Below are positions 46,899-61,647 of a stretch of 64,000 nt of DNA, in pieces. The notes under the pieces are model-generated. The model worked only from the letters and a program-made list of their open reading frames with translations, ran no database searches and was not told the origin of the DNA. Positions within the stretch are counted from its first letter, which is position 1; each line of letters begins with the position of its first letter. Made by a program: the position numbers and the translations under genes. The stretch is from sequence record OQ718158.1; one strand, given 5' to 3'.

Positions 46899-47146
46899 GT
46901 AATCATATGTAGTCATAAGTAATCATATATAAACATTTAAGTAATCATTTATAATCACTGTAGTGATCAGTAGTGAGTACTAGAGTGTAATAGAGTACAG
47001 GAATGTGCACGTTTAATCAAGAACGTAGCAGTACTGATATGTCACTAAAGTAGGCAGAGGAAGTCTGCCGTACTTTGTAGTTTCCAAGCTCCTTTTCCAT
47101 TTTGCAAATTACATCAAATGTAATCAAAAGTAATCAAAAGTAATCA
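46899..47146 (+). repeat. 10-bp phased GTAATCA repeats
   Basis: 46899, 46909 (GTAGTCA), 46919, 46941, 46951 (ATAATCA); 47120, 47130, 47140. Confidence 0.75.
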
Positions 47147-47423
47147 CGCAATGATTAGTACTGAATTATTACTTTCACCTTAATTTCAATTACCCCTTTA
47201 CCCTTCGGGGTAAAATTCCATTACCCCTTGAGGCTCCAGCAAAAAGTTGGTTAGTACTCCATCCTAAATCTCGATCCTAAAAATTTTGGAGTACCTATGA
47301 AATAAAAGTTGGATCTTCGAAATTTGAAATTTACGTTGGGACGTTTATGATTTGTGGGATATAATGATGTTTGTAGTCGGGTAGTTTTCAAGAATATCAG
47401 CACTGAATAATGAAAGAAAGCTA

Positions 47424-47451
47424 TTGACATTATGATTCAGTACTGTATAAT
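47424..47451 (+). promoter_or_regulatory. sigma70 promoter with no downstream ORF
   Basis: TTGACA-16-TATAAT. Confidence 0.75.
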
Positions 47452-47457
47452 GTTCTA

Positions 47458-47745
47458 CATAGGGTGATGAGTTGCTGCGAACAATTCATTTACTCTACCT
47501 CCTGTCGTGAGACAGTACAGAAAAGATAGTTCCTCCTGTGGTGGTACATCTTTTTGAACCTCATATGAAAATCGTAATAACAGTACTGATATTAACAGAA
47601 TGGTGTCAGTACTGATTTTAATCTAAAGCATTATGCCACCAGCACAAGCTGGTGGATTCCCTCTAACAGTATTCAGTACTACATGATGGTCTTCATCCTC
47701 CTAGGGTAACATAGTGAGGGCTATGATGGCAGTACTGAATACTCC
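47458..47745 (+). ncRNA. candidate ~290-nt structured RNA
   Basis: Run of at least six stems with G-U pairs, a GNRA loop and a multibranch 3' domain. Confidence 0.45.
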
Positions 47746-47840
47746 CTTTCAAAAGATAGATCTATGGTATAGTACTGACGGATTTTGGGCGTAGTTACCC
47801 TGGATGGATTTTGGACGTAGATATGTCTAGCCCTCCAGAA

Positions 47841-47968
47841 GTCTGGAAGTAAAGATGGCTATCCATCTAGACGGCTAAACGGCTAGATTTCTGGATGGCT
47901 AGATGGCTAGACGTTTGGACGGCTAAACGGCTAGATGGTTACACGTCTGGAAGTATAGACGGCTAAAT
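47841..47968 (+). repeat. 16 tandem degenerate octamers (consensus GGCTAGAY)
   Basis: GGCTA at 47857, 47873, 47881, 47897, 47905, 47921, 47929, 47961, all in one 8-bp phase. Confidence 0.85.
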
Positions 47969-48119
47969 CAAAATTTTATTTTGTTTTTCCAATAGTTCCC
48001 CTACCGCGTGGGGATAGTTTCCCCGCAGTATCTGGAGTTAGATTTTTCTGAATCTGGAATCATTATCTTATAAACTGGGGGCAATGTCAACGACCTGGAC
48101 GGATATTTTTAAAAATTTT

Positions 48120-48215
48120 TTCAGTACTGAATTTTGGGCGTAACTATGCACCCGGTGGGCTTGAGTCTTTCTCGACTTGATGGAACTATTATACAGTACT
48201 GAAAAAATAAAGCAA
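48120..48215 (-). ncRNA. promoter-driven GGGTGC cassette A
   Basis: TTGCTT-16-TATAAT then AAGCCCACCGGGTGCATAGTTACGCCC; no ORF. Confidence 0.5.
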
Positions 48216-48249
48216 TACCCTGGAAGCAAAAAAGTTTTAATTAATTTGC

Positions 48250-48338
48250 TTGCTATCCTGGGCCGGACTATGGTACTATATTTCAGTACTGAGAAAGTGC
48301 GTTTACCTGCTAGGGTGCGGGAGTGTATCCTTTTTTTA
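48250..48338 (+). ncRNA. promoter-driven GGGTGC cassette B
   Basis: TTGCTA-18-TGG-TACTAT then CCTGCTAGGGTGCGGGAGTGTATC. Confidence 0.45.
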
Positions 48339-48341
48339 TAT

Positions 48342-48431
48342 CTTGAATTTTGGGCGTAATTCCGCACCCTCTGGGGTTTCCGCTTTCTCGCGTCTATGTA
48401 GTAATTATACGCTTTTTCAGGATCAAGTCAA
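48342..48431 (-). ncRNA. promoter-driven GGGTGC cassette C
   Basis: TTGACT-16-TATAAT then AACCCCAGAGGGTGCGGAATTACGCCC. Confidence 0.45.
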
Positions 48432-48807
48432 TACCTAAAAACAAAATAATTGAAAATAATTTAACGCGTTTAAACGGCCCGTAAAGCCCTGGAATGATTG
48501 GAATGGTGCAAATGTATAGCTTAGGTGTATTAATGCGTTAGAATGCGTCTGAGGCCGTTTTACGGGGTATAGGGATGATTTGGTGGATTGATTCAGTACT
48601 GAATGATAGTACTACTATATAGAAAGATAGTTCCCCTGGATGGTTGCAGTACTGAATGATAGTACTGAATAATAGTTCCCCTATATAGAAAGAAAACTAT
48701 TTTAAAAGTATTTGTAGAAAGTACTTGCAAACTAAGTTTAACGGCGTATAATGTTTTACATCGAGAGCGGGAACACTTCCCGCTACATATTACGAGAGAT
48801 TAAAACG

Positions 48808-50696: not shown

Positions 50697-50775
50697 TACT
50701 TTTTTAATATTCAGTACTGAAAACTATTTTTAAAAAGTACTTGCAAACTATGTTTAAAGGCGTATAATGTTTTAC

Positions 50776-50850
50776 ATCAGGACGGGGAACGAAATAAGTA
50801 ACTTCCCGTTAAGTAGCCCAGGAGTAAGGCACACGAAAAACTCCCCTGAT
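50776..50850 (+). ncRNA. pseudoknot small RNA, copy 1
   Basis: Own promoter (TATAAT 50763); AUCAGG/CCUGAU closing stem; UAAGUA-GCC-CA-GGAGU-AA-GGC-ACA-CGAAAA-ACUCC. Confidence 0.75.
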
Positions 50851-50918
50851 AAAATAGTTTGACAATTGTTTTTAAAAGCGTATAATACTTACATCAACTA
50901 CTGAATGAGGGTTACAAA

Positions 50919-51593
50919 ATGAAAACTATCACTACTACTACTTTCGTTATGGATTTTTCTGAATTGAATGAGGGTTGCAAAGCGAAAACTGTCACTAATA
51001 CTACTTTCGTTATGGATTTTTCTGAATTGAACGCAGAACAAAAAACGTCAGCTATCGAACTGGTTCGGGAACGTGAAAAAAACTTAAACGATGATTATTT
51101 TTCTGAAAGTGAAATTGAATACTATAAAGAAACAGTACTACCGGAATATGGCATTAATGACGCTGAAATACAATTCAGTGGTTTTTGGTCCCAGGGTGAC
51201 GGTGCATCAATCAGTACTGACCACGTTGACGCAGTGAAGTTTTTACGCAAGGTAAGAGCATTAACTAAATATCGCTCAATCCGTCACTTGCTGAATGAAG
51301 ATGATTTGGCGATGAGTGTAAAGCGTTCTCACTCCCACTACTCGCATGAGAATACTGTAAGCGGGTACATTGAATCGGCTTACACTGATTTAACCGCAAA
51401 ACAAGAAACGTTAGTTAATGAGCTTGAGGAACTACTCACTGAAACTATTCGTGAATTATCCCGCAAGTTGTACCGTGATTTAGAGAATGCATATGAGGAT
51501 CAATTCACTACTGAAAACATTACGGCACTGATTGAGGGTAACGAATATCAATTCAATGTTATTAATGGCGTAGTAGAATCAATCGAATATTAA
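50919..51593 (+). CDS. early protein with FSGFWSQGDGA motif and N-terminal 21-aa tandem duplication
   Basis: ORF with own promoter; motif family seen in mobile elements, function unverified. Confidence 0.8.
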   Translation: MKTITTTTFVMDFSELNEGCKAKTVTNTTFVMDFSELNAEQKTSAIELVREREKNLNDDYFSESEIEYYKETVLPEYGINDAEIQFSGFWSQGDGASISTDHVDAVKFLRKVRALTKYRSIRHLLNEDDLAMSVKRSHSHYSHENTVSGYIESAYTDLTAKQETLVNELEELLTETIRELSRKLYRDLENAYEDQFTTENITALIEGNEYQFNVINGVVESIEY

Positions 51594-51683
51594 TTTAAAA
51601 AGTACTTGCAAACTAAGTTTAAAGGCGTATAATACTTTATATCGAGGCGGGGAGTGGTTCCCCGCTCAAACGAGGATTAAAAA

Positions 51684-51923
51684 ATGGCTAGTACTAAAAC
51701 TTACAACGGGCACAAAAACAAAACTCATTGGAATGTTTCCTTATGGATTAATAACGGTGAGTCATTGTATCGGCTTGCTCAAAGTTGCATCGCACAAAGT
51801 AGAACTAAAGATATTGCTGCGGAATGTATGTACCGCAGATTAAAAGCCAACGGTACTACTACAACGCCGGACGGATTCAAGTATAGCACTACGGCGATCC
51901 GTGCTGCAATGGTTGGAATGTAA
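51684..51923 (+). CDS. early protein, paralog of 49581
   Basis: Near-identical motifs. Confidence 0.8.
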   Translation: MASTKTYNGHKNKTHWNVSLWINNGESLYRLAQSCIAQSRTKDIAAECMYRRLKANGTTTTPDGFKYSTTAIRAAMVGM

Positions 51924-51981
51924 TATTCAGTACTGTAACAATGGCGGGGAATGGTTCCCGCCTTTATTGAGGGTTTATCTA

Positions 51982-52242
51982 ATGAGTAAAGTAATTAGCT
52001 ATACAGTACTAAGCAAGTCATTATCTATTAGCCAGTGCACCGATGGTTATTGGCTATTTGATGAAACGCGTGGAATGAATTTAGCTATGCGTGCAAAAAC
52101 TGCTGAGGCGGCGTATCTTGAGGCACTGGAATACTACCAGGAACGTTTAACGGAAGTAGAAGAAGATTATAAAAGCCTCAAAGCGAAAGTAGATCATTTC
52201 GTCGGTCAATTCATCGAGGAAGACGACGACAAACAATATTGA
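51982..52242 (+). CDS. early hypothetical protein with coiled coil
   Basis: Start moved to 51982 after GAGGG. Confidence 0.7.
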   Translation: MSKVISYTVLSKSLSISQCTDGYWLFDETRGMNLAMRAKTAEAAYLEALEYYQERLTEVEEDYKSLKAKVDHFVGQFIEEDDDKQY

Positions 52243-52328
52243 AAAAGTACTTGCAATTAGTTTTAAGTACTGTATAATGGTTTACATCAAAGGGAGAAAT
52301 GGTTCTCCCTGGTAATGAGGAAAATAAA

Positions 52329-52550
52329 ATGGCTAATATCACTACTCTTTCCCAACTGGAAGCACTGGTTAAATCTATGCGGGAACATGCCGACAAAATC
52401 GGCGTACAAGATCCAGCCGTTTGCTTCTGCGACGAATTGAATGATGATACCCTGGTAATAGCAGAAGTCCAGGACGTTTCTAACTATTCCTCGCGTTACA
52501 CTGGCGGCGTAGCAAATAAAGGTGACTTCTGTTTATACCTTACAAAATAA
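52329..52550 (+). CDS. early hypothetical protein
   Basis: Start moved to 52329. Confidence 0.75.
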   Translation: MANITTLSQLEALVKSMREHADKIGVQDPAVCFCDELNDDTLVIAEVQDVSNYSSRYTGGVANKGDFCLYLTK

Positions 52551-52594
52551 CAACGCGGGGAGATAATAACTCCCCGTTACTTTTTCAGTACTGA

Positions 52595-52685
52595 ATCATT
52601 TAATAGACGGATCTCGGCACCCGGTGGGTTAGTGACTGTTTCGTCTTGATGTAGTAATTATGCCAGTACTGGATGCACTTGTCAA
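52595..52685 (-). ncRNA. promoter-driven GGGTGC cassette F
   Basis: TTGACA-17-CATAAT then CACTAACCCACCGGGTGCC. Confidence 0.5.
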
Positions 52686-52793
52686 CAATTATTTTTCAAA
52701 TACTTTTTATTAAAATACTTGCAATTAGTTTTTAAACGCGTATAATGTTTTGCATAGGGGGAGCGGTTCCCCTGGTAACTAAGGAATAAGAAA

Positions 52794-53030
52794 ATGGTCG
52801 AACAAATCAAATCAACGTCTTCGAATGTAACGGGAACGGTAGCACACTTTACTAGTGATGAATCGCGGGGCGTTCCCTATTGTGCTGTACATGTAAACAC
52901 TGAGGGTAACTACTGGTTTACGGTTTACGGATCATATTCATTTGGACGGCCAGGGCATCAAAAAATTCTGGATAAAGTACAACCAACGGGTAAAAATATC
53001 ACTGCCGAAATGTTTTATAAAAAATCATAA
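52794..53030 (+). CDS. early hypothetical protein
   Basis: Own cassette. Confidence 0.75.
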   Translation: MVEQIKSTSSNVTGTVAHFTSDESRGVPYCAVHVNTEGNYWFTVYGSYSFGRPGHQKILDKVQPTGKNITAEMFYKKS

Positions 53031-53114
53031 AGTACTTGCAATTAGTTTTTAGTACTGTATAATATTTTACATCGCAAGGGGGAGCGGTTCCCCCTGGTAA
53101 CTAAGGATAATCAA

Positions 53115-53414
53115 ATGAAAATTGCAATCATCGCCCTGGCTTTATCTGTTTCCTCTTTCGCTGTTAATGCGTCATTAGATGTAAGTAGTGAAAAATTCAT
53201 TCAGTGCACTGTTGCAATGACCGATGAAAGAACTGGCGAGATTGTATTAAAGGATTTAGAGATCCAGCCGGAAGCATTTAAAAACGGGCCGTTCCATGAA
53301 GAAGACGAAAAAGGTAGCACGACAATTTATTACGATGCCAGTACTAAACGCGGTTCGGTCACTGTAATGGATACTGAGAAAGTAACTCATACTGGCGTTA
53401 TTAATTGCCGTTGA
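53115..53414 (+). CDS. early secreted protein
   Basis: Signal peptide ending AVNA/SL. Confidence 0.75.
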   Translation: MKIAIIALALSVSSFAVNASLDVSSEKFIQCTVAMTDERTGEIVLKDLEIQPEAFKNGPFHEEDEKGSTTIYYDASTKRGSVTVMDTEKVTHTGVINCR

Positions 53415-53435
53415 TAGATACTACGGGGTAACATC

Positions 53436-53666
53436 ATGACTAAGCGAATTGTTTTACTTAACGAAAGCAGTACTACACAACTACTTAACGCCGTGCATTA
53501 TGATATTGAAACGAGCGTTAATCTTATCAGTACTGTCGTACTGTTGGACACTGGAAAGGTCGCCAATGATAAAGCGATTGCAGGTATATTAACGGATCTT
53601 GAGCCTGGTAGCAGTGCACCCATAACGTTAAATGGTAAAGTGTTTAATATTTTACTCACTGATTAA
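53436..53666 (+). CDS. early hypothetical protein
   Basis: Followed by terminator AGCCCACC/GGTGGGCT-T7. Confidence 0.7.
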   Translation: MTKRIVLLNESSTTQLLNAVHYDIETSVNLISTVVLLDTGKVANDKAIAGILTDLEPGSSAPITLNGKVFNILLTD

Positions 53667-53784
53667 GTACATAGCCCACCTGGTGGGCTTTTTTTGTTTT
53701 TGTAGTATCGTAGTACTGAGATACTTTGAAAATAGTTTTAAAAAAGTAGTTGACATTACCGCAGAAAAGCGTAGAATGTATTAC

Positions 53785-53857
53785 ATCAAGACGGGGAGCA
53801 CTAAGTAGACCGCCAGTAAGTCGAACGAAAAACTGGACACGTCGAGAAAACTTTGAT
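53785..53857 (+). ncRNA. pseudoknot small RNA, copy 3
   Basis: TTGACA-16-TAGAAT promoter; UAAGUA-GAC-CG-CCAGU-AA-GUC-GAA-CGAAAA-ACUGG; AUCAA/UUGAU closing. Confidence 0.7.
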
Positions 53858-53900
53858 ACACTAATAAACGTAAACTAAACTTTAATTGAGGATTTATAAA

Positions 53901-54383
53901 ATGGCTAATGTAAAATCATTCATCAAAGCACTGGTAGCAAATGAAACTAACGTCGCGGCTGAGATCCTGGCTGAACTGGATAACGATACCATGAAAGCGG
54001 TACGCAATAATTTTAACATCGCGTACAGTACTGCGAAAGAACTACAAGCAAATAAAGCGGCAGAAATTGAAGCGGCAAAGGCTGCCCGTGAAGCAGAACT
54101 ACAAGCAACAATCGAAAGTATTCAGGCGGCAGTAGTTGGATTGGATCTGGAAGTAGTTACAGAGATGGCACAAAAAGCCCTGGCGGTTAAGTATGGGGAA
54201 GACAAGCCAGAAGTAAAAGCCAAAAAATGGATTCAGGAACGCGTAGCGGTAGTACTGGATAATGGGGAAGAATATCTGATTCCGGTGCGTGGTAACTGTA
54301 TTGCGGTAGTACTGGACGCGATTAACGCCAGCGGTATGACTCGCGAGGAATGGATCGAATCTCATCGCAAAGTTGAAGCATAA
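53901..54383 (+). CDS. helical/coiled-coil protein, possibly nucleoid-protein-like
   Basis: Start moved to 53901; Ala/Glu/Lys-rich helices plus short C-terminal domain. Confidence 0.75.
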   Translation: MANVKSFIKALVANETNVAAEILAELDNDTMKAVRNNFNIAYSTAKELQANKAAEIEAAKAAREAELQATIESIQAAVVGLDLEVVTEMAQKALAVKYGEDKPEVKAKKWIQERVAVVLDNGEEYLIPVRGNCIAVVLDAINASGMTREEWIESHRKVEA

Positions 54384-54667
54384 CAATTAAAGTACTGAAT
54401 CACTAGCCCACTGTATAAGTGGGCTTTTTTGTGTTTATCGTTTACCAGGCCACCAGCACCGCCTAGAAACGATTCTAACGTATTAAACTGTTTATCTGAT
54501 GCATTGCCCTAGCTGGTGGCGTGAAGGTCGTTAGAATGCGATTGAGAGCGTTTAAAGTATTTTGCAAAAAGTAATAAAAAGTACTTGCACGATTAAGAGA
54601 TTAGCGTATAATGTTTTACATCGAGAGGGGGAAACGGTTCTCCTTCCAAATCAAAGGAATCAAAACA

Positions 54668-54895
54668 ATGGCTATCGTAATCACTCGCGTAACTGGTACT
54701 ACTGGCAATTCTTCTACTGTTGCTGTAATTACTAATAAGAAAGGTGCGGAATTGCATTTTGCAATGGATAAATGGGCCGTTAATGAGTTCGGTCAGTGGG
54801 CAAGTGTAGCATACATTGAAACCTATCAAGTGCCGTCGATTAGTTTAACTGATTTGGGCGTTGAGCGTATCCTTTGCCTTGATGAATTAAATTAA
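54668..54895 (+). CDS. early hypothetical protein
   Basis: True start MAIVITR. Confidence 0.75.
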   Translation: MAIVITRVTGTTGNSSTVAVITNKKGAELHFAMDKWAVNEFGQWASVAYIETYQVPSISLTDLGVERILCLDELN

Positions 54896-54980
54896 AAAAG
54901 TACTTGCAAAGTAAATCGAATAAAGTATAATACATTACATCAAGGGGAGAAATGGTTCTCCCCACTACAAGGAAACTAAA

Positions 54981-55124
54981 ATGAAAACTTGTCAATGTGG
55001 TCAGAAATCTATTACGGGTTTAAAGCGGGGCGTTGCTCTTTGCCAGTACCATTATAATTTACAAGTATGGGGTAAAGAATGGGCCGACCAGGTGGAAGCA
55101 GCAAAGAAAGCAAAAAGTAAGTAA
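54981..55124 (+). CDS. 47-aa putative Zn-binding peptide (not in track)
   Basis: MKTCQCG...LCQYH; own cassette. Confidence 0.65.
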   Translation: MKTCQCGQKSITGLKRGVALCQYHYNLQVWGKEWADQVEAAKKAKSK

Positions 55125-55204
55125 AATATTATCACAGTACTATTGACATAGTTTGATAGTACTGGCATAATAGATTTTATCAAGACAACTAAGAGGAAAC
55201 AATA

Positions 55205-55417
55205 ATGGCTATCATCACAAAAATCAAAGTTAACAAATCACTGGTTAAACTTGAACAAGTGAAAGCAGGTTATAAAGTATCGTGGTGCGGTATGTATCGG
55301 ATGTTCACCGATATAGACAATGCAATCAAGTACTACACTGACACCGTTGCCTCATTCGTTCGTGCTGATGTGGTTATGGCAGTGGCAACGCACAAAGCAG
55401 CGAAAGAAAGTAAGTAA
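55205..55417 (+). CDS. early protein, paralog of 58343
   Basis: MAII-x-K...Y-x-VS. Confidence 0.7.
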   Translation: MAIITKIKVNKSLVKLEQVKAGYKVSWCGMYRMFTDIDNAIKYYTDTVASFVRADVVMAVATHKAAKESK

Positions 55418-55506
55418 AAATATTATCACAGTACTATTGACATAGTTTGATAGTACTGGCATAATAGATTTTATCAAGACAACATATTAATTTAAGGAAT
55501 ACAAAA

Positions 55507-55830
55507 ATGGCTAAAACTATCATTAACACCGTTTCCCTGGCTGCAATCCGTGCAATCAATGTTGACGGTAAACGTTGGACTGATTCATATGGCAATACTT
55601 ATCATTCTTGTCATGTAAGCGTTGAACTGGATAACGGTTTGAATGATCTGGCGGTTGAATCATTTACTTATGGCTATGAAGATGCATATCAACAAACGGC
55701 GTTATCTCTCTTAAAGGAATCAGTAGACGGGCTTAATACTGATGAAACCTCCCTTACTCGTGTGTGCAATGATCTTAATATCCCGTTGCATTGTACTGTA
55801 CAGAATGTTAAACGCAAAAAAGATCTTTAA
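55507..55830 (+). CDS. early protein, paralog of 62004
   Basis: RWTDSxGNTYHSC...FTYGY...VKRKKD. Confidence 0.8.
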   Translation: MAKTIINTVSLAAIRAINVDGKRWTDSYGNTYHSCHVSVELDNGLNDLAVESFTYGYEDAYQQTALSLLKESVDGLNTDETSLTRVCNDLNIPLHCTVQNVKRKKDL

Positions 55831-55909
55831 TTAGCTTTACTTTATGCAGATACTTTGATATAGTGTCTGCATAGGGGAAAGAAATTAAACTACTTAAGAG
55901 GATCGTATA

Positions 55910-56179
55910 ATGAAAAATATCAGTACTTTAATCGATGCAGGTACTCATGTTCGTCGGTCTATGGTTGCAACCAGTACTACAAAACAAGTAGCGAGCGGTT
56001 ATCTTGTATTTGTGCACGATGGTAAACTCCTGGAACGTTCAATCAATTTTGATGTTAAAAACAATTGCCGTTTTATTATCTTTAAGCGTGAGCAATATAA
56101 AATTGATTTACCAGCAAAGCCCATTAGTGGGGCGTACAACGTGCAATCATTGTTTGAACGTCAACCATACACCTATTAA
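55910..56179 (+). CDS. early hypothetical protein
   Basis: GAGG RBS. Confidence 0.7.
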   Translation: MKNISTLIDAGTHVRRSMVATSTTKQVASGYLVFVHDGKLLERSINFDVKNNCRFIIFKREQYKIDLPAKPISGAYNVQSLFERQPYTY

Positions 56180-56230
56180 TCAAAACATCGTTAGCGGTCG
56201 ATTCAGGCCGCTTATATTGGGGATTATACC

Positions 56231-56503
56231 ATGAACGTTAATCAAGTACTGAATGAGATCGAAAGCATCATTAAACCGATGAAGCGTACTGATGCTATGT
56301 TAACACCGGAAGAATGCCGCCTTTATGAGCGTTACAGCGTCGAACAAGTCCAGGCAATGGCTATGGCTACCCCAGCCGTTAAACCGCCTGAGAATGCGTT
56401 ACAGGACGTTACAGGGGATTATATCATCAATCCAGTACTAGGGAAGATGGCTGCAATCACCGAAGATCAACAAGACTACTTAAGCCAGTACTTAAAAGGT
56501 TAA
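56231..56503 (+). CDS. early hypothetical protein
   Basis: ORF with RBS. Confidence 0.7.
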   Translation: MNVNQVLNEIESIIKPMKRTDAMLTPEECRLYERYSVEQVQAMAMATPAVKPPENALQDVTGDYIINPVLGKMAAITEDQQDYLSQYLKG

Positions 56504-56508
56504 TTAAT

Positions 56509-56718
56509 ATGCTTACTGTACAGGATAAGATCGACATCTTAAAGGTTAATATGTATGTGATTGATGCAGTACCTGGTAAAGTATTTGCCTACGATGACAC
56601 CACTGTAAGCGATTTCTACTATAGCCAGGCCGTGGGGGATCTTTCTGTACAGTCGGTTATTGAAAACGTAGTTAATGCAGCGTATGAGCATTTACTTTCA
56701 AATAGTACTTGCAATTAG
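56509..56718 (+). CDS. early hypothetical protein
   Basis: ORF with AAGG RBS. Confidence 0.7.
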   Translation: MLTVQDKIDILKVNMYVIDAVPGKVFAYDDTTVSDFYYSQAVGDLSVQSVIENVVNAAYEHLLSNSTCN

Positions 56719-56787
56719 TTTTTAAACGCGTATAATGTTTTACATGAAGGGGAGAAATGATTCTCCCCACTAATTAAGGAATATGAA

Positions 56788-56934
56788 ATGAAAGCATCAA
56801 AAAAGAGTACTAACAAGAAAGCACGTTCAACCTTAGATGGGGTATTCCCTTTACGTTTCGTTGATGAAGTGGTTTCCTACCCGCCTGGCCTTACTCCTGA
56901 GATGGTAGAAAGTTTGCGTAAATCTAAAAAATAG
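56788..56934 (+). CDS. 48-aa basic peptide (not in track)
   Basis: Own cassette; MKASKKSTNKKARST... Confidence 0.6.
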   Translation: MKASKKSTNKKARSTLDGVFPLRFVDEVVSYPPGLTPEMVESLRKSKK

Positions 56935-57015
56935 TACTTGCAATTAGTTTTTAGTACTGTATAATGTTTTACATGAAGGGGAGAAATGATTCTCCCCAAT
57001 AACAGGAGAAACAAA

Positions 57016-57168
57016 ATGAAACAATACAACGCTCGGTTTGATGTTACTATCGGTAACGGCAAAGGTCAATTCTCTTTCAGTACTCGCAAAAGTTATACAG
57101 AAAACTTCCTGCGTAATTGTGCACTGACCGCCGCACAAATTAAACATTACTTTCAGGCTAAAAAATGA
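57016..57168 (+). CDS. 50-aa early peptide
   Basis: True start MKQYNARF after AGGAG. Confidence 0.65.
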   Translation: MKQYNARFDVTIGNGKGQFSFSTRKSYTENFLRNCALTAAQIKHYFQAKK

Positions 57169-57404
57169 AATCATTAGCTTACTATAGTTCTGCGGTGATC
57201 GGTGCATTGATCGCGGCGTTGTTAGTAACCTATCTATTCTTTATGGTGATTTAAATGAATCCAACAGGTTTAAACTATAAAAGTTGTTCGGCGTTTACGA
57301 AAGCAAATAAAGCGAATGCACGTAAAGCGAAAGTACAGGAATACATCAAGCAAGGCATGACGCGAAAAGCGGCGATTATAAAAGCTAAAAATAAATGAAA
57401 AAAG

Positions 57405-57487
57405 TGGTTGACTCCGGTCAGCCATTTTGCTATTATATATTCATTGAGAGATAGCTCACTAGCCCACAGGGTGCATAAGTGTATCTA
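57405..57487 (+). ncRNA. terminator/promoter hybrid driving GGGTGC cassette G
   Basis: TTGACT-17-TATTAT then TAGCCCACAGGGTGCATAAGTGTATCTA. Confidence 0.5.
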
Positions 57488-57609
57488 TTATATGAGTATT
57501 GAGTACTGAAAACTATTTTTAAAAAGTACTTGCAAACTATCTCAATAAGCGTATAATGTTTTACATCGAGAGGGGGAAACGGTTTCCCCTGGTAATAAGG
57601 AAACAAATC

Positions 57610-57951
57610 ATGACTATCTCAATTGCTCAATCTAACTTTGAAAATGAAATCATCGCCCAGGCACTGCGTTTAAATGATGGTCGGGCCGAAATTAATTACG
57701 GTTTCAATTCAGGCGGTTGCGAAAACTATCAGTACTTTGTAACGGCTGATGGCGGTGTCCTGGGTATCAATACAGTTATTGTAAACATCCAAAAAATTAA
57801 TTTCAATGATCCAGACGATAGCCAGTTTTACATCACTGGCGTAGACGTGAACTATGAGGATGACTCACTAACTGATGATCACACTGGCGAGCGGTTAGAA
57901 AGTGCATACGGTGAAGATGATTATCAGTCCGGTCCAGAAGATTTCGAATAA
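57610..57951 (+). CDS. acidic early protein
   Basis: True start MTISIAQ; GGCENYQ...NYED...DHTGE. Confidence 0.75.
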   Translation: MTISIAQSNFENEIIAQALRLNDGRAEINYGFNSGGCENYQYFVTADGGVLGINTVIVNIQKINFNDPDDSQFYITGVDVNYEDDSLTDDHTGERLESAYGEDDYQSGPEDFE

Positions 57952-58046
57952 TATAAAAAATAGTTTGACAATAGATTATAGTACTGTATAATTAATTACA
58001 TCAAGGGGAGAAAAACTTCTCCCCACTAACAGAGAGAGAAAACAAA

Positions 58047-58259
58047 ATGGCTAATATCCGGTCGAAATTAAAAAATGCAAAACAAGTTTTATTTTCAGAT
58101 CATGAATACTTTAATAAAGATATTACAGGAGTTACAAGTATCAAGGAAGTAAAAGAAAAAACCGGCGTTTTGTGTGATGTGCGATTAGTTGGGACATTTG
58201 GGAATAACGTGCTATATCGCTGCGGTGATTACAATTTTACACTGACTATCATTAACTAA
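58047..58259 (+). CDS. early hypothetical protein
   Basis: Own cassette. Confidence 0.75.
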   Translation: MANIRSKLKNAKQVLFSDHEYFNKDITGVTSIKEVKEKTGVLCDVRLVGTFGNNVLYRCGDYNFTLTIIN

Positions 58260-58342
58260 AAATATTATCACAGTACTATTGACATAGTTTGATAGTACTG
58301 ACATAATAACTTTTATCAACTACACTACTAAGGAATTAAAAA

Positions 58343-58522
58343 ATGGCTATCATCGCAAAAACTGAAATCGTTGGTCTGGATTCTATCATCATGACGTTTG
58401 AAGATCAAAAAGGTATGTATGTAGTTTCCTATGGTGATTATGTTCGGGAGTATGAAACGGTAGACGAAGCCTTTGAAAGTTATATTCGCCAGGTGAATAA
58501 AGCATACGACGACTACCGCTAA
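58343..58522 (+). CDS. 59-aa early protein (not in track), paralog of 55205
   Basis: Shares promoter repeat and MAII-x-K start. Confidence 0.65.
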   Translation: MAIIAKTEIVGLDSIIMTFEDQKGMYVVSYGDYVREYETVDEAFESYIRQVNKAYDDYR

Positions 58523-58621
58523 AATATATTACCAGTACTATTAAATCTATTGACAACGTTTGATAGTACTGTATAATAAGTTTTATAAACAGTAGTTAAC
58601 TTAACCTAAGAGAGAAACAAA

Positions 58622-58765
58622 ATGATCGCACTGGATTCATTCATCGACGCAGTACTGGCAAAAACTGGCGAGGATCTGACCGCAGAACAATACGCGATGA
58701 TCGAGCAATGTCAGCAAAACGGTAAATCGGTGAAAGATACTGTTAAGATTATCCGCAAGATGTAA
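58622..58765 (+). CDS. 47-aa early peptide (not in track)
   Basis: Own promoter; MIALDSFIDAVLAKTG...; terminator after. Confidence 0.6.
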   Translation: MIALDSFIDAVLAKTGEDLTAEQYAMIEQCQQNGKSVKDTVKIIRKM

Positions 58766-58864
58766 TATTATAGCCCACTGGTTAACGCTGGTGGGCTTTA
58801 ATCATTTACCCTATACAATGCCAGTACTAAACCGTTTATCTCGTTAGAATGCGTTACAGGACGT

Positions 58865-59068
58865 TTGACAATGATTAGCATGAAATCAGTACAAAAACAA
58901 ATAGAAACATTATCAAAAATTAAACGTAAACAATACTCGTTAGAATATACAATCAATGGTAACTATCATCTAATGAAAGAAAATAATTTTATAGTCATTG
59001 ATGAATCATTGCAAGTTATTAGTATAGTACTGAAAGCATTAATTAATGATAGAAAAAAATTAAAATAA
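58865..59068 (+). CDS. hypothetical protein
   Basis: ORF; start uncertain. Confidence 0.5.
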   Translation: MTMISMKSVQKQIETLSKIKRKQYSLEYTINGNYHLMKENNFIVIDESLQVISIVLKALINDRKKLK

Positions 59069-59071
59069 TTG

Positions 59072-59153
59072 TTGACATACAATGCCAGTACTGGCATAAT
59101 ACTTACATCAAGACGAGAACGTCACTAACCCATAGGGTGCACAAATGTAACTA
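59072..59153 (+). ncRNA. promoter-driven GGGTGC cassette H
   Basis: TTGACA-17-CATAAT; GACG-AGAA-CGTC hairpin; TAACCCATAGGGTGCACAAATGTAAC. Confidence 0.5.
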
Positions 59154-59396
59154 TATAATATCGATCAATAAATGATCAAAAAAGTACTGGATCAATTTAG
59201 CATAAGGAGTATAATTCTGATCAATTCTTGATCAAAGGCAATATACGCAGTTGAATTTATATAGACAGTACAAAGGCGTTACTATCCGTGGTAATGCTGA
59301 TGGATATGTAGTATCATACGGTTTGAATAAGATAAGCACTAGTAGTATTATTGTAGCATTACAGTACTATAGTATTTTTATAATGAGGTTAAAATA

Positions 59397-59654
59397 ATGG
59401 CTGTTGGATTCGCGAAGGACGGGGCCGAGCAAGACGAGATTAACGCAGTTATTCAGGCCGCTGTAAACCACGCTAGAACGCAAATTAACGCACAAATAGA
59501 ATCACTGATACATTGCCTCGACTGTGGCGATAAAATCCCTGAGAATCGCCGCCAGGTCGTTAAGGGGTGTAAGTACTGTATCACTTGCCAGGAGGATCAT
59601 GATAGTACTTTTAAACGTCAACCGCGTAATTGTTGGCATAGATCTATGAGATAA
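59397..59654 (+). CDS. DksA/TraR-family C4 zinc-finger protein (YbiI-like)
   Basis: CLDCGDKIPENRRQVVKGCKYCITCQE; N-terminus MAVGFAKDGAEQDEI. Confidence 0.9.
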   Translation: MAVGFAKDGAEQDEINAVIQAAVNHARTQINAQIESLIHCLDCGDKIPENRRQVVKGCKYCITCQEDHDSTFKRQPRNCWHRSMR

Positions 59655-59717
59655 AAAGTATTGACAGTACTATCCAGTAGTGTATAATGTTTTATATCTT
59701 AACTGAGGATAGAAATC

Positions 59718-60074
59718 ATGGGAATACAACATATCACGCGTACTACTGACAATGGCGAGATCACTGGCTATCAAGTACAGGGCAAAGTAGCACAATTGCA
59801 GTACTGGTTTGTTAAACGTGGAATCATTGCACCGGATCTTGATTATGACCGTGTAGCGTTTATTGATTCTCTTTATGTTGATCCTGATAGTCGGGGGAAT
59901 GGTGAAGGTAACGAATTAATGAATGCCTTTATTGATGCCGCCGATGATTCAGATTGTATCATCTTAGAATGCGATACGGGAGAAGATAACGCCTTTAATC
60001 TTAAAGAATGGTATGAAGGTTTCGGATTCGAGGTACTGATCGATAGTGAATATCCTATCATGATTTTATCATAG
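59718..60074 (+). CDS. GNAT-family acetyltransferase
   Basis: IDSLYVDPDSRGNGEG (acetyl-CoA motif A), WYEGFGF. Confidence 0.85.
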   Translation: MGIQHITRTTDNGEITGYQVQGKVAQLQYWFVKRGIIAPDLDYDRVAFIDSLYVDPDSRGNGEGNELMNAFIDAADDSDCIILECDTGEDNAFNLKEWYEGFGFEVLIDSEYPIMILS

Positions 60075-60153
60075 TACTTGCATTTAGTTTTCAGTACTGT
60101 ATAATAGTTTACATGAAGGGGAGAATAGTTCTCCCCACTACAAGGAAAGACAA

Positions 60154-60342
60154 ATGGAAAACTTATCAAGTATTTTAGTACAAGATGATTTCGGTAATCC
60201 TGGAAGTGCTATCATTGTTCGGGGTAATAAAGCAACGTTTGTTATTGCTGGTGGACCCGTACAGCGTAGCATTAAAAATAATGCTGTTACCATTAATAAT
60301 GTACGCTATCGCTTAGATAAAGAATTAATTCATAAACTGTAA
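60154..60342 (+). CDS. early hypothetical protein
   Basis: Own cassette. Confidence 0.7.
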   Translation: MENLSSILVQDDFGNPGSAIIVRGNKATFVIAGGPVQRSIKNNAVTINNVRYRLDKELIHKL

Positions 60343-60428
60343 AAAAGTACTGGACAATAGATTATAGTACTGTATAATAAGTTACATGAAGGGGAGAAAA
60401 TGATTCTCCCCACTAAGAGGAAAGAAAA

Positions 60429-60641
60429 ATGCAAGGTCAACTAATCGTTCGTAAATGGTCTGATACTAACGCTAAACCGTGGGATGTACAATACATCGCC
60501 CCCAATGGTGAATCCAGATATCAACCAGGTGTAACGCATAGTACTGAGCAATTCGCCGCCGCTCATCGTGAACGTCTGTTACAATCAATGCAGCAAGGTT
60601 TCGGTGAAAAATTCATTCAGGATCATTGGCTGAAAGATTAA
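60429..60641 (+). CDS. early hypothetical protein
   Basis: Own cassette. Confidence 0.7.
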   Translation: MQGQLIVRKWSDTNAKPWDVQYIAPNGESRYQPGVTHSTEQFAAAHRERLLQSMQQGFGEKFIQDHWLKD

Positions 60642-60727
60642 AAAGTTCTTGCACAGTACTGAATAAAGTGTATAATGTTTTATATCGAGAGGGGAATAGT
60701 TCCCCTCCTAACAAAAAGGAAAGTATA

Positions 60728-60901
60728 ATGATCCAAGTAGAATTATCAGTACTGAAAGATCTATTTTATCGGTTAGGTACTAATGGCGAGTATCCTAAAA
60801 GTGATACCGCAAAACTTTTTGTATCACTCGACTTATGGCAACGCGAACAATTAGTAATGTCGTGGCGTAAAGGTAAAGCAGATCGCGAGGTGAAAGCATG
60901 A
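60728..60901 (+). CDS. 57-aa early protein
   Basis: True start MIQVELS after cassette. Confidence 0.65.
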   Translation: MIQVELSVLKDLFYRLGTNGEYPKSDTAKLFVSLDLWQREQLVMSWRKGKADREVKA

Positions 60902-61047
60902 AAGAATTCTTATTTGAAGTAGTGTTTCAAGGTGTCGGTAGTAACCAACTGATTCGCTCAAGTGGTTACAATGTTAACCAGGCATGGAATAACATTAAAC
61001 AAATGTACCCGAACGCTATCACATATCGCAACCCGAAAGAAGTTTAA
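60898..61047 (+). CDS. 49-aa early peptide (not in track)
   Basis: ATGA-coupled; MKEFLFEVVFQG... Confidence 0.6.
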   Translation: MKEFLFEVVFQGVGSNQLIRSSGYNVNQAWNNIKQMYPNAITYRNPKEV

Positions 61048-61061
61048 AAATAATTGAAAAA

Positions 61062-61140
61062 GGGATTGACTCCGGTCAGTCCCTTTGCTATTATATACGC
61101 ATAGAAACAAATTAGCCCACCGGGTGCATAAATGTATCTA
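61062..61140 (+). ncRNA. terminator/promoter hybrid driving GGGTGC cassette I
   Basis: TTGACT-17-TATTAT then TAGCCCACCGGGTGCATAAATGTATCTA. Confidence 0.5.
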
Positions 61141-61229
61141 TTGTTTGCTGGTGGCTAGTACTATCAAGTACTGAAAACTATTTTTAAAAAGTACTTGCAA
61201 AGTATCACGATAAGCGTATAATGTTTTAC

Positions 61230-61302
61230 ATCAGGACGGGGAACGAAACAAGTAACCCCGTTAAGTAGTCCAGGAGTAAGACATACGAAAAACTCCCCTG
61301 AT
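61230..61302 (+). ncRNA. pseudoknot small RNA, copy 2
   Basis: Own promoter (TATAAT 61217); UAAGUA-GUC-CA-GGAGU-AA-GAC-AUA-CGAAAA-ACUCC; AUCAGG/CCUGAU. Confidence 0.75.
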
Positions 61303-61371
61303 AAAATAGTTTGACAATAGAAAGTAAACGAGTATAATACTTACATCAACCACTGATAAGGAAACATTAAA

Positions 61372-61647
61372 ATGCGGATTCTACTGACAGCTAACGAAAT
61401 CGAACAAGTACTGACTACTAACCTGGAAGACTGGAAACGTGAAGCAGATATCCAGGCGGTTCAATGGCTTAATGATAAGTTAACGCCGGATGATTTAAGT
61501 AAGATTGTAGATCCTCAATTCTACGAAGATATTCACGACACCGCGTTAAGCGTCGAGGATGTACTTGATAAGCACTACATTGATACTGATTTACATGTTT
61601 ACGGTCGTAAAAACTTTATCACTATTCACGACATTTACAATACTTAA
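61372..61647 (+). CDS. early hypothetical protein
   Basis: Own promoter, AAGGA RBS. Confidence 0.75.
   Translation: MRILLTANEIEQVLTTNLEDWKREADIQAVQWLNDKLTPDDLSKIVDPQFYEDIHDTALSVEDVLDKHYIDTDLHVYGRKNFITIHDIYNT

Follow-up and report, generated by a model that had tools for sequence, protein, structure and literature searches.

The window analysed here is a 64,000-nt stretch of sequence record OQ718158.1. Its plus strand carries three units of about 75 nt (50776-50850, 53785-53857, and 61230-61302), here called units 1, 2, and 3, which place one compact RNA element, with a pseudoknot at its core, near the start of early phage transcripts. The region shares 99.7% identity with Escherichia phage vB_Ec-M-J and about 86% with phage 121Q (genus Asteriusvirus); both are jumbo phages with genomes of about 350 kb, and in vB_Ec-M-J the region is part of the direct terminal repeat. 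From about 48.7 kb the plus strand is densely set with early promoters, almost one per small gene, and terminators are sparse in this early block. Roughly 30 early promoters lie in the window, and the pseudoknot element is found behind just three of them; the other early leaders open with the same bases and form a plain GC hairpin soon after the start. A search with ARAGORN found no tRNA or tmRNA gene in the window.

A preliminary description of this DNA had reported units without an open reading frame (ORF) behind strong promoters, and all three were found on the plus strand, each starting 7 to 8 nt past a promoter of the sigma-70 type that is itself preceded by an A/T-rich stretch. The promoters at 50741-50768 and 61195-61222 match the consensus at 10 of 12 positions and the one at 53750-53777 at 11 of 12, and the only ORFs overlapping the units are mechanical ones with starts inside the promoters. 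The early expression proposed for them agrees with these promoter sequences, which place the units in early transcripts driven by the host polymerase. The core pattern given in that description has three matches in the window, with none expected, and a covariance model built from 40 family members and run on the window with filters off returned exactly units 1, 2, and 3 (48.4, 54.3, and 51.3 bits), the next match scoring 11 bits.

Unit 1 may be taken as the reference copy. Its promoter consists of a -35 hexamer at 50741-50746 (TTGCAA), a 16-nt spacer, and a -10 hexamer at 50763-50768 (TATAAT), with an inferred start at about 50775-50776. The whole closed domain (50776-50850, 75 nt) has a minimum free energy of -19.3 kcal/mol with a z score of -2.0. 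In the predicted fold its first six bases, AUCAGG (50776-50781), form a closing helix with CCUGAU (50845-50850), a pairing that recurs in unit 3 and in phage muut. Next comes a predicted hairpin, P1 (50782-50809), the counterpart of the plain 5' hairpin in other leaders of the window, whose stem has a G-U pair in 121Q (L142) where unit 1 has G-C. Seven junction bases follow (50810-50816), the last of which is also the first base of the S1 stem. S1 pairs GCC (50816-50818) with GGC (50828-50830), and S2 pairs GGAG (50821-50824) with CUCC (50841-50844); both assignments are backed by pair counts across the family. Between the two 3' strands lies the A-rich loop 3 (50831-50840). Since P1 of units 1 and 3 is the plain hairpin of the other early leaders, such a unit is an ordinary leader to which a pseudoknot and a closing helix have been added.

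Unit 3 (61230-61302) is built in the same way, with a minimum free energy of -20.9 kcal/mol and a z score of -3.1. Its parts are a closing helix (61230-61235 with 61297-61302), a hairpin (61236-61261), S1 (61268-61270 with 61280-61282, GUC/GAC), and S2 (61273-61276 with 61293-61296, GGAG/CUCC). In unit 2 (53785-53857), which follows a promoter composed of TTGACA, a 16-nt spacer, and TAGAAT, a linker replaces hairpin P1. Its pseudoknot core (53808-53836) has S1 at 53808-53810 and 53820-53822 (GAC/GUC) and S2 at 53813-53816 and 53833-53836 (CCAG/CUGG). The preliminary description had the ends of all three units pairing with each other. This stands for AUCAGG/CCUGAU, which units 1 and 3 form in their minimum-energy folds, but the fold of unit 2 favors GACG/CGUC (53790-53793 with 53840-53843) over AUCAA/UUGAU (53785-53789 with 53853-53857), which is a possible additional pairing. 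The folding tool predicts nested folds only, and these show S2 together with the closing helix.

None of the three units is followed by a terminator. Units 1 and 3 lead directly into a second promoter that matches the consensus at 12 of 12 positions (50859-50886 and 61311-61338, respectively), and unit 2 leads into its own gene. The second promoter after unit 1 drives 50919-51593 without the RNA unit; this gene encodes 224 amino acids (phrog_5162, function unknown), and its ribosome binding site and start are covered by a 63-bp tandem repeat at 50902-51031 (2.1 copies, 92% identical). The gene after unit 2 (53901-54383, 160 amino acids, phrog_27871) is likewise of unknown function. Terminator-like sequences flank this unit and its gene, as a hairpin at 53673-53689, upstream of the promoter, and as a site at 54405-54425, beyond the gene. 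The gene after unit 3 (61372-61647) encodes 91 amino acids (phrog_14947), and in the roughly 146-kb phage muut, unit 3, the second promoter, and the start of this gene have nearly the same sequence. Pfam, PHROGs, and PADLOC assigned the downstream proteins of the window to families of unknown function only, with no toxin or defense match.

The pseudoknot itself rests on covariation far beyond the window. Pairing was tested with a pattern that fixed only the unpaired bases and the outer S1 pairs, scanned over three public collections, IMG/VR included. The scans returned 120 distinct contexts that split cleanly into 66 family members and 54 unrelated sequences. The free middle pair of S1 is Watson-Crick in 66/66 contexts that have early-leader surroundings and an S2 complement (about 53 AU, 9 UA, 3 CG, and 1 GC), whereas the same position pairs in 10 of the 54 chance contexts, which is about the chance rate. 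Homologues thus keep the GNC/GN'C pairing that had been proposed from the window alone. Among 36 distinct cores the middle pair is AU in 25, UA in 6, CG in 4, and GC in 1, and S1 is paired in 100% of its cells. Over the whole core, 98.2% of pair cells are paired in the 40 sequences, compared with 23 to 41% for slid partners; for the 36 distinct cores the value is 95.1%, and slid controls over both sets range from 23 to 43%. The covariation score of the 36 cores is 0.33; shuffles average 0.065, and none of 500 came up to the observed value.

Changes on both sides were seen in four of the eight pairs of the core, including three of the four S2 core pairs. S2 had been drawn with five pairs (NNAGU/ACUNN). 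The first four take the forms CCUG/CAGG, CCAG/CUGG, GGAG/CUCC, CUUG/CAAG, and UCAG/CUGA in the family, but the fifth, a U-A pair, fails in 9 of the 36 distinct cores, so we treat S2 as a 4-bp stem. This fifth pair is the main source of unpaired cells, and a few more come from two rows displaced by indels (L089 and SALSA). Several compensatory switches also separate otherwise nearly identical copies (e.g., unit 1 from unit 3, L106 from T3, and SFPH2 from ST31) and therefore count as independent events. The seven junction bases and four positions of loop 3 (A, G, A, and A) are invariant in all 36 cores, the other loop-3 columns being variable; part of this invariance is ascertainment, because the search patterns and the retrieval favored those bases. 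Of the unpaired UAAGUA and CGAAAA that the preliminary description called invariant, the latter is so within the window, but three of its positions vary across the family.

Beyond the core, T7-like phages have a hairpin 5' of it whose loop is complementary, in a fixed register, to bases beginning at the third position after S2. This loop-tail helix occurs in ten complementary versions among about 60 distinct sequences, one of which has a single mismatch; examples are GUCAA/UUGAC, GUCAUC/GAUGAC, GUCGGU/ACCGAC, and GAUUAG/CUAAUC. The stem of the T7-like hairpin covaries too, with G-U intermediates included, and such intermediates in hairpin stems fit only an RNA made from the sense strand. In the jumbo phages and the group of Pantoea phage LIMEzero, the partner of the tail is not the hairpin loop but the opening bases of the transcript. 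P1 is present in some of these folds (units 1 and 3, muut, and Munch) and missing from others (unit 2, Hallingskeid, L053, and the LIMEzero group), and the sequences of the closing helix vary from group to group. The 5'-terminal bases are paired in all non-T7 architectures, and in T7 they are paired within a separate 5' hairpin. On this comparative evidence the core is a predicted H-type pseudoknot with a 3-bp S1, a 4-bp S2, and an A-rich loop 3, as had been suggested from three copies, and the whole element is a predicted closed, doubly knotted domain of about 70 to 75 nt in which one core is set into three architectures.

The preliminary description had pointed to related jumbo phages as the place to look for homologues, and the family turned out to be much wider. 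In blastn searches, the 35-nt core of unit 2 is 91% identical to positions 553-587 of the T7-like Yersinia phage phiA1122, and the flanks share nothing; unit 2 also matches the Rak2-like jumbo phages Munch, 7t3, fENko-Kae01, and Hallingskeid, and unit 1 matches Justusliebigvirus phages of about 146 kb such as muut. With the phiA1122 stretch as the query, 587 GenBank phage records were matched, and in 449 the match covered 80% of the query or more; the 587 records include T7, T3, 13a, phiYeO3-12, Kayfunavirus, Przondovirus, Drulisvirus, and Cronosvirus. LIMEzero (L154) has the element as well. In the T7 record, where the A1 start is annotated at 498 and the A2 start at 626, the element comprises a hairpin at 536-549, the core at 551-586, and a tail pairing at 589-593, and this tail is the -35 hexamer of A2. 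The element therefore spans +39 to +96 of the A1 transcript, with the core at +54 to +89, and the T7 order of promoter, knot, and next promoter matches that of units 1 and 3.

Hosts of the element-bearing phages, which comprise T7-like podoviruses, the roughly 146-kb myoviruses, and two jumbo-phage lineages, belong to the Enterobacterales throughout. Searching 5,426 complete E. coli genomes for the core by blastn gave no match, and the same search of 72,556 plasmids gave three marginal chance matches only, so a mimic of a host or plasmid sequence was rejected at the level of similarity that blastn can detect. A pattern search of 185,579 species genomes gave 19 matches, a single one of which is real, namely a 2.7-kb T3-like contig that had been binned into a metagenome-assembled genome.

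Where the element occurs, its position is constant. Across more than 100 distinct contexts, drawn from four phage lineages, it always lies within about 40 nt of an early start site, and a terminator after it was never seen. From its end to the -35 hexamer of the following promoter there are 0 to 10 bp in most lineages. A separate promoter for the downstream gene follows the element in units 1 and 3, muut, Munch, Hallingskeid, and the T7-like phages; unit 2 has no promoter behind it, nor is one evident behind the copy of the LIMEzero group. We also considered a constant spacing to the next -10 hexamer, as for a sigma-dependent pause that would aid folding, and rejected it because this distance varies between about 26 and about 70 nt. 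Jumbo genomes have three copies each, doubled where the terminal repeat is assembled. The downstream genes vary by lineage (ocr, S-adenosylmethionine [SAM] hydrolase, gp0.45, and small proteins of unknown function), so it is no regulator dedicated to a single gene. A stand-alone small RNA gene would have its own promoter, which the element does have, and its own intrinsic terminator, which it has in no lineage. The discrete 73- to 75-nt transcripts originally proposed are thus not borne out by the sequence, and the element should be the 5'-terminal domain of longer transcripts unless these are processed.

Comparison with known RNA classes did not place the element. Rfam 15, searched at the gathering score and also at E values up to 10 on pieces of 12 kb, 1.8 kb, 118 nt, and 91 nt (the two shortest with the laxest filters), gave nothing on it, in agreement with the preliminary description, which had not recognized it as ToxI, preQ1-I, or SAM-II, and ToxI, preQ1, SAM-II, and the known ribozymes were excluded by this test. 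Type III antitoxin RNAs lie as tandem arrays of short repeats just upstream of a toxin gene and are cut out by the toxin. ToxI and the pseudo-ToxI of phage PhiTE resemble the element as small pseudoknotted RNAs, and the latter is a phage-borne precedent for an RNA decoy. The element, however, occurs in single copies with no tandem direct-repeat array at or near the units (which lie 3 kb and 7.4 kb apart), its neighbors have no defense match, and in T7-like phages the next gene is ocr or SAM hydrolase and not an endoribonuclease toxin; the suggestion that it mimics ToxI is accordingly not supported by these features. Unit 2, with its RNA, 160-amino-acid gene, and terminator, was considered as a ToxN-like module and rejected, since its protein gave no match of that kind and the neighboring genes are different at units 1 and 3 and in T7.

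Among compact aptamers, preQ1-I and SAM-II/SAM-V share the H-type topology, the A-rich third loop, and a size of 35 to 50 nt. They differ in that the element matches none of their models, lacks queuosine or methionine genes nearby, has an S1 of only 3 bp, and is followed in no lineage by an expression platform (terminator, antiterminator, or sequestered ribosome binding site). The leader pseudoknot of T-even gene 32 is likewise an H-type fold at the 5' end of a phage message, but it is bound to one gene and to autoregulation by the product of that gene, whereas the element precedes unrelated genes. A boxA-like sequence, reminiscent of the rrn and lambda nut sites, does follow the element in the untranslated early leader of phiA1122 (L001, about 795-812) and of LIMEzero (L154, about 925-945). 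It lies 27 nt downstream of the element in LIMEzero and about 250 nt downstream, after A3, in T7-like phages, a distance that sets these leaders apart from nut sites.

The closest functional parallel that we see is the put RNA of phage HK022. The putL RNA is about 70 nt long, begins at +3 of an early promoter, and contains a minor-groove triplex; put RNA consists of two stem-loops arranged in a V shape, needs no phage protein, and binds the zinc-binding domain of the beta' subunit (PMC9378689). Like putL and putR, the element is about 70 nt, lies directly downstream of an early sigma-70 promoter of a coliphage on the same strand, and would be made by the host polymerase. The compact fold with a minor-groove triple helix may also have its counterpart, as the A-rich loop 3 is suggested to lie over S1.

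We tentatively favor the possibility that the element, as an RNA made close to its promoter, attaches to a conserved piece of host machinery, with the transcribing RNA polymerase as the likeliest candidate, by analogy with HK022 put RNA, although we hold this as a possible rather than a probable reading. Under such a mechanism, the domain would fold while leaving the polymerase, and its invariant unpaired bases would dock on the host partner. That partner would most likely be the elongating polymerase from which the RNA has just emerged, possibly together with Nus factors. The polymerase might then pause or terminate less, so that the first early transcripts are completed fast; the logic would be that of put RNA, reached through an unrelated fold. 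Action in cis is suggested by the element being always promoter-proximal and never having its own 3' end, and put RNA is comparable in size, position, and independence from phage proteins. The boxA-like sequences in the T7-like and LIMEzero leaders suggest that those leaders are already devoted to modification of the polymerase. A conserved host partner is further indicated by the 91% core identity of unit 2 with a T7-like phage in unrelated flanks. Covarying stems, invariant loops, hosts confined to the Enterobacterales, and the lack of any copy in bacterial genomes together point the same way, toward a partner that is both specific and conserved.

Several observations weigh against this polymerase-directed reading. 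Nearly every early gene of the window has its own strong promoter and there are few terminators, so antitermination is not obviously needed, and only 3 of the roughly 30 early promoters bear the element; put RNA, by comparison, sits before terminators that require read-through. The second promoter after units 1 and 3 serves the gene without the RNA, which would suit an RNA made for its own sake. Matches to boxA within the window are no more frequent than chance would give, and none is near the three units. Finally, put RNA has two stem-loops, whereas the element is a pseudoknot with a closing helix, and the two show no likeness in sequence.

If the RNA is instead the product, a host nuclease might trim the transcript after the closing helix, in an A/U-rich stretch that is single stranded, and the released, stable knot of about 75 nt could work in trans by decoying or inhibiting a protein conserved in Enterobacterales, whether a defense nuclease or a housekeeping RNA-binding factor. 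This would agree with the separate downstream promoters in units 1 and 3, muut, Munch, Hallingskeid, and the T7-like phages, with three copies per jumbo genome, and with the pairing of both domain ends, which would bury the 5' triphosphate end. It would also agree with a place at the very start of transcription, where phage anti-defense functions such as ocr and SAM hydrolase are found, and with confinement to virulent phages of one host order across unrelated lineages. Nevertheless, none of the more than 100 contexts has a terminator or another defined 3' end, the E. coli genomes and plasmids hold nothing similar to mimic, and the features of known antitoxin RNAs are all missing. In our estimate a trans-acting decoy is possible rather than probable and comes only slightly behind the polymerase-directed reading. 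The same paired ends could serve another purpose, in that the knot and closing helix might hide the 5' end, block pyrophosphate removal and the entry or scanning of RNase E, and so give longer-lived early mRNA. All other early leaders of the window start with a plain GC hairpin, which units 1 and 3 retain as P1. Pairing of the 5'-terminal bases is seen in each of the non-T7 architectures, and in T7 a separate 5' hairpin provides it. However, a mere stabilizer needs no invariant unpaired bases at 91% identity between unrelated phages, plain hairpins evidently suffice for the other early genes, and transcripts from the second promoters lack the element altogether, so we regard 5'-end protection as unlikely.

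The compact H-type pseudoknot with its A-rich loop 3 and invariant junction is also the general architecture of the smallest aptamers, and the element might belong to a new riboswitch class that senses the condition of the host cell at infection through a small molecule or an ion. With no expression platform in any lineage, downstream genes that differ entirely between lineages, and no match to an Rfam riboswitch model, this appears quite improbable. We give a similarly low rating to a new class of self-cleaving ribozyme that would cut the leader and leave a 5'-hydroxyl on the message or free the knot. The size, pseudoknots, covarying stems, and invariant junction cluster are typical of small nucleolytic ribozymes, but no Rfam ribozyme model matches, searches with about 100 nt included, no cleavage dinucleotide stands out, and the three closure architectures differ beyond what a ribozyme core usually tolerates. 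Of the alternatives, we find it hardest to credit that the conserved sequence acts as DNA, as an UP-like element or a protein-binding site for the following promoter. It does contain an A-tract and ends 0 to 10 bp before the next -35 hexamer in most lineages, yet the compensatory changes fall in four helices, the G-U intermediates make sense on one strand only, the orientation to the upstream promoter is constant, and unit 2 and, as far as is evident, the LIMEzero-group copy have no promoter behind them.

The invariant loops set among freely covarying stems lead us to argue for a specific partner in Enterobacterales, a view that draws on sequence comparison. A broader proposal is that the knot is an RNA device that needs no protein and passes horizontally from phage to phage, and that very different virulent phages of enteric bacteria, including T7, produce it first of all in order to disarm or reprogram a single conserved host machine, be it the elongating RNA polymerase or a defense or decay factor. 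This seems to us to stand somewhat short of an even chance. If true, it would mean a new functional class of phage RNA that has gone unnoticed for decades in the leader of the most thoroughly studied phage, and the T7 A1 leader, whose start is widely used as a standard transcription template, would hold an unrecognized RNA domain supported by covariation. The element is the first thing transcribed, ahead of any phage protein, and the identity of its partner would reveal either a second, structurally unrelated case of put-type reprogramming of the polymerase or an RNA-based takeover or anti-defense function. In full-text literature, searched with exact sequence strings among other terms and with older subscription literature outside its coverage, we found no description of the element; exact strings of it appear only within tables of promoter fragments (e.g., PMC11863960). 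We file it as a new RNA family among the structured early-leader RNAs of phages, one that is ready for RNA databases and that could mark the first early promoter in uncharacterized phage genomes.

Several features of the surrounding DNA deserve mention in their own right. The promoters at 48725, 49185, 49502, 50183, 51606, 54583, and 57530 have a common upstream A/T block, and their leaders open with AUC(G/A)(A/G)G and then form a plain GC hairpin from about +6 to +28; this shared start looks like a common 5'-end module of the early leaders. Another leader (region 59072-59130), made from the promoter at 59072, opens like unit 2 (AUCAAGACG...) with the pseudoknot core absent, and it may be a degenerate relative or merely share the leader start.

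Directly upstream of the early-promoter block of the plus strand, positions 46900-48700 are noncoding, repeat-rich DNA, with GTAATCA-type repeats at about 46900-47150 and GGCTAGA or GACGGCTAAACGG-type repeats at about 47850-47960, and this stretch may be near a genome terminus or terminal repeat. Within it, a 12/12 consensus promoter at 47424-47451 precedes about 150 nt in which no ORF is convincing, and after these comes an inverted repeat with a T-run at 47581-47614, so that 47424-47620 may be another small RNA. The arms of this inverted repeat are two copies of the 8-bp palindrome CAGTACTG, which occurs 59 times across the window against 1.0 expected (e.g., at 47438, 47581, 47607, 50712, and 59086). 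Several copies lie within promoter spacers or flanking intergenic DNA, and the palindrome may be a binding or modification site. Lastly, near-identical hairpins with 12-bp stems at 57401-57428 and 61059-61086 are each followed by GCTATTATAT and stand ahead of early promoter blocks, and both include the promoter-like pair TTGACT...TATTAT.

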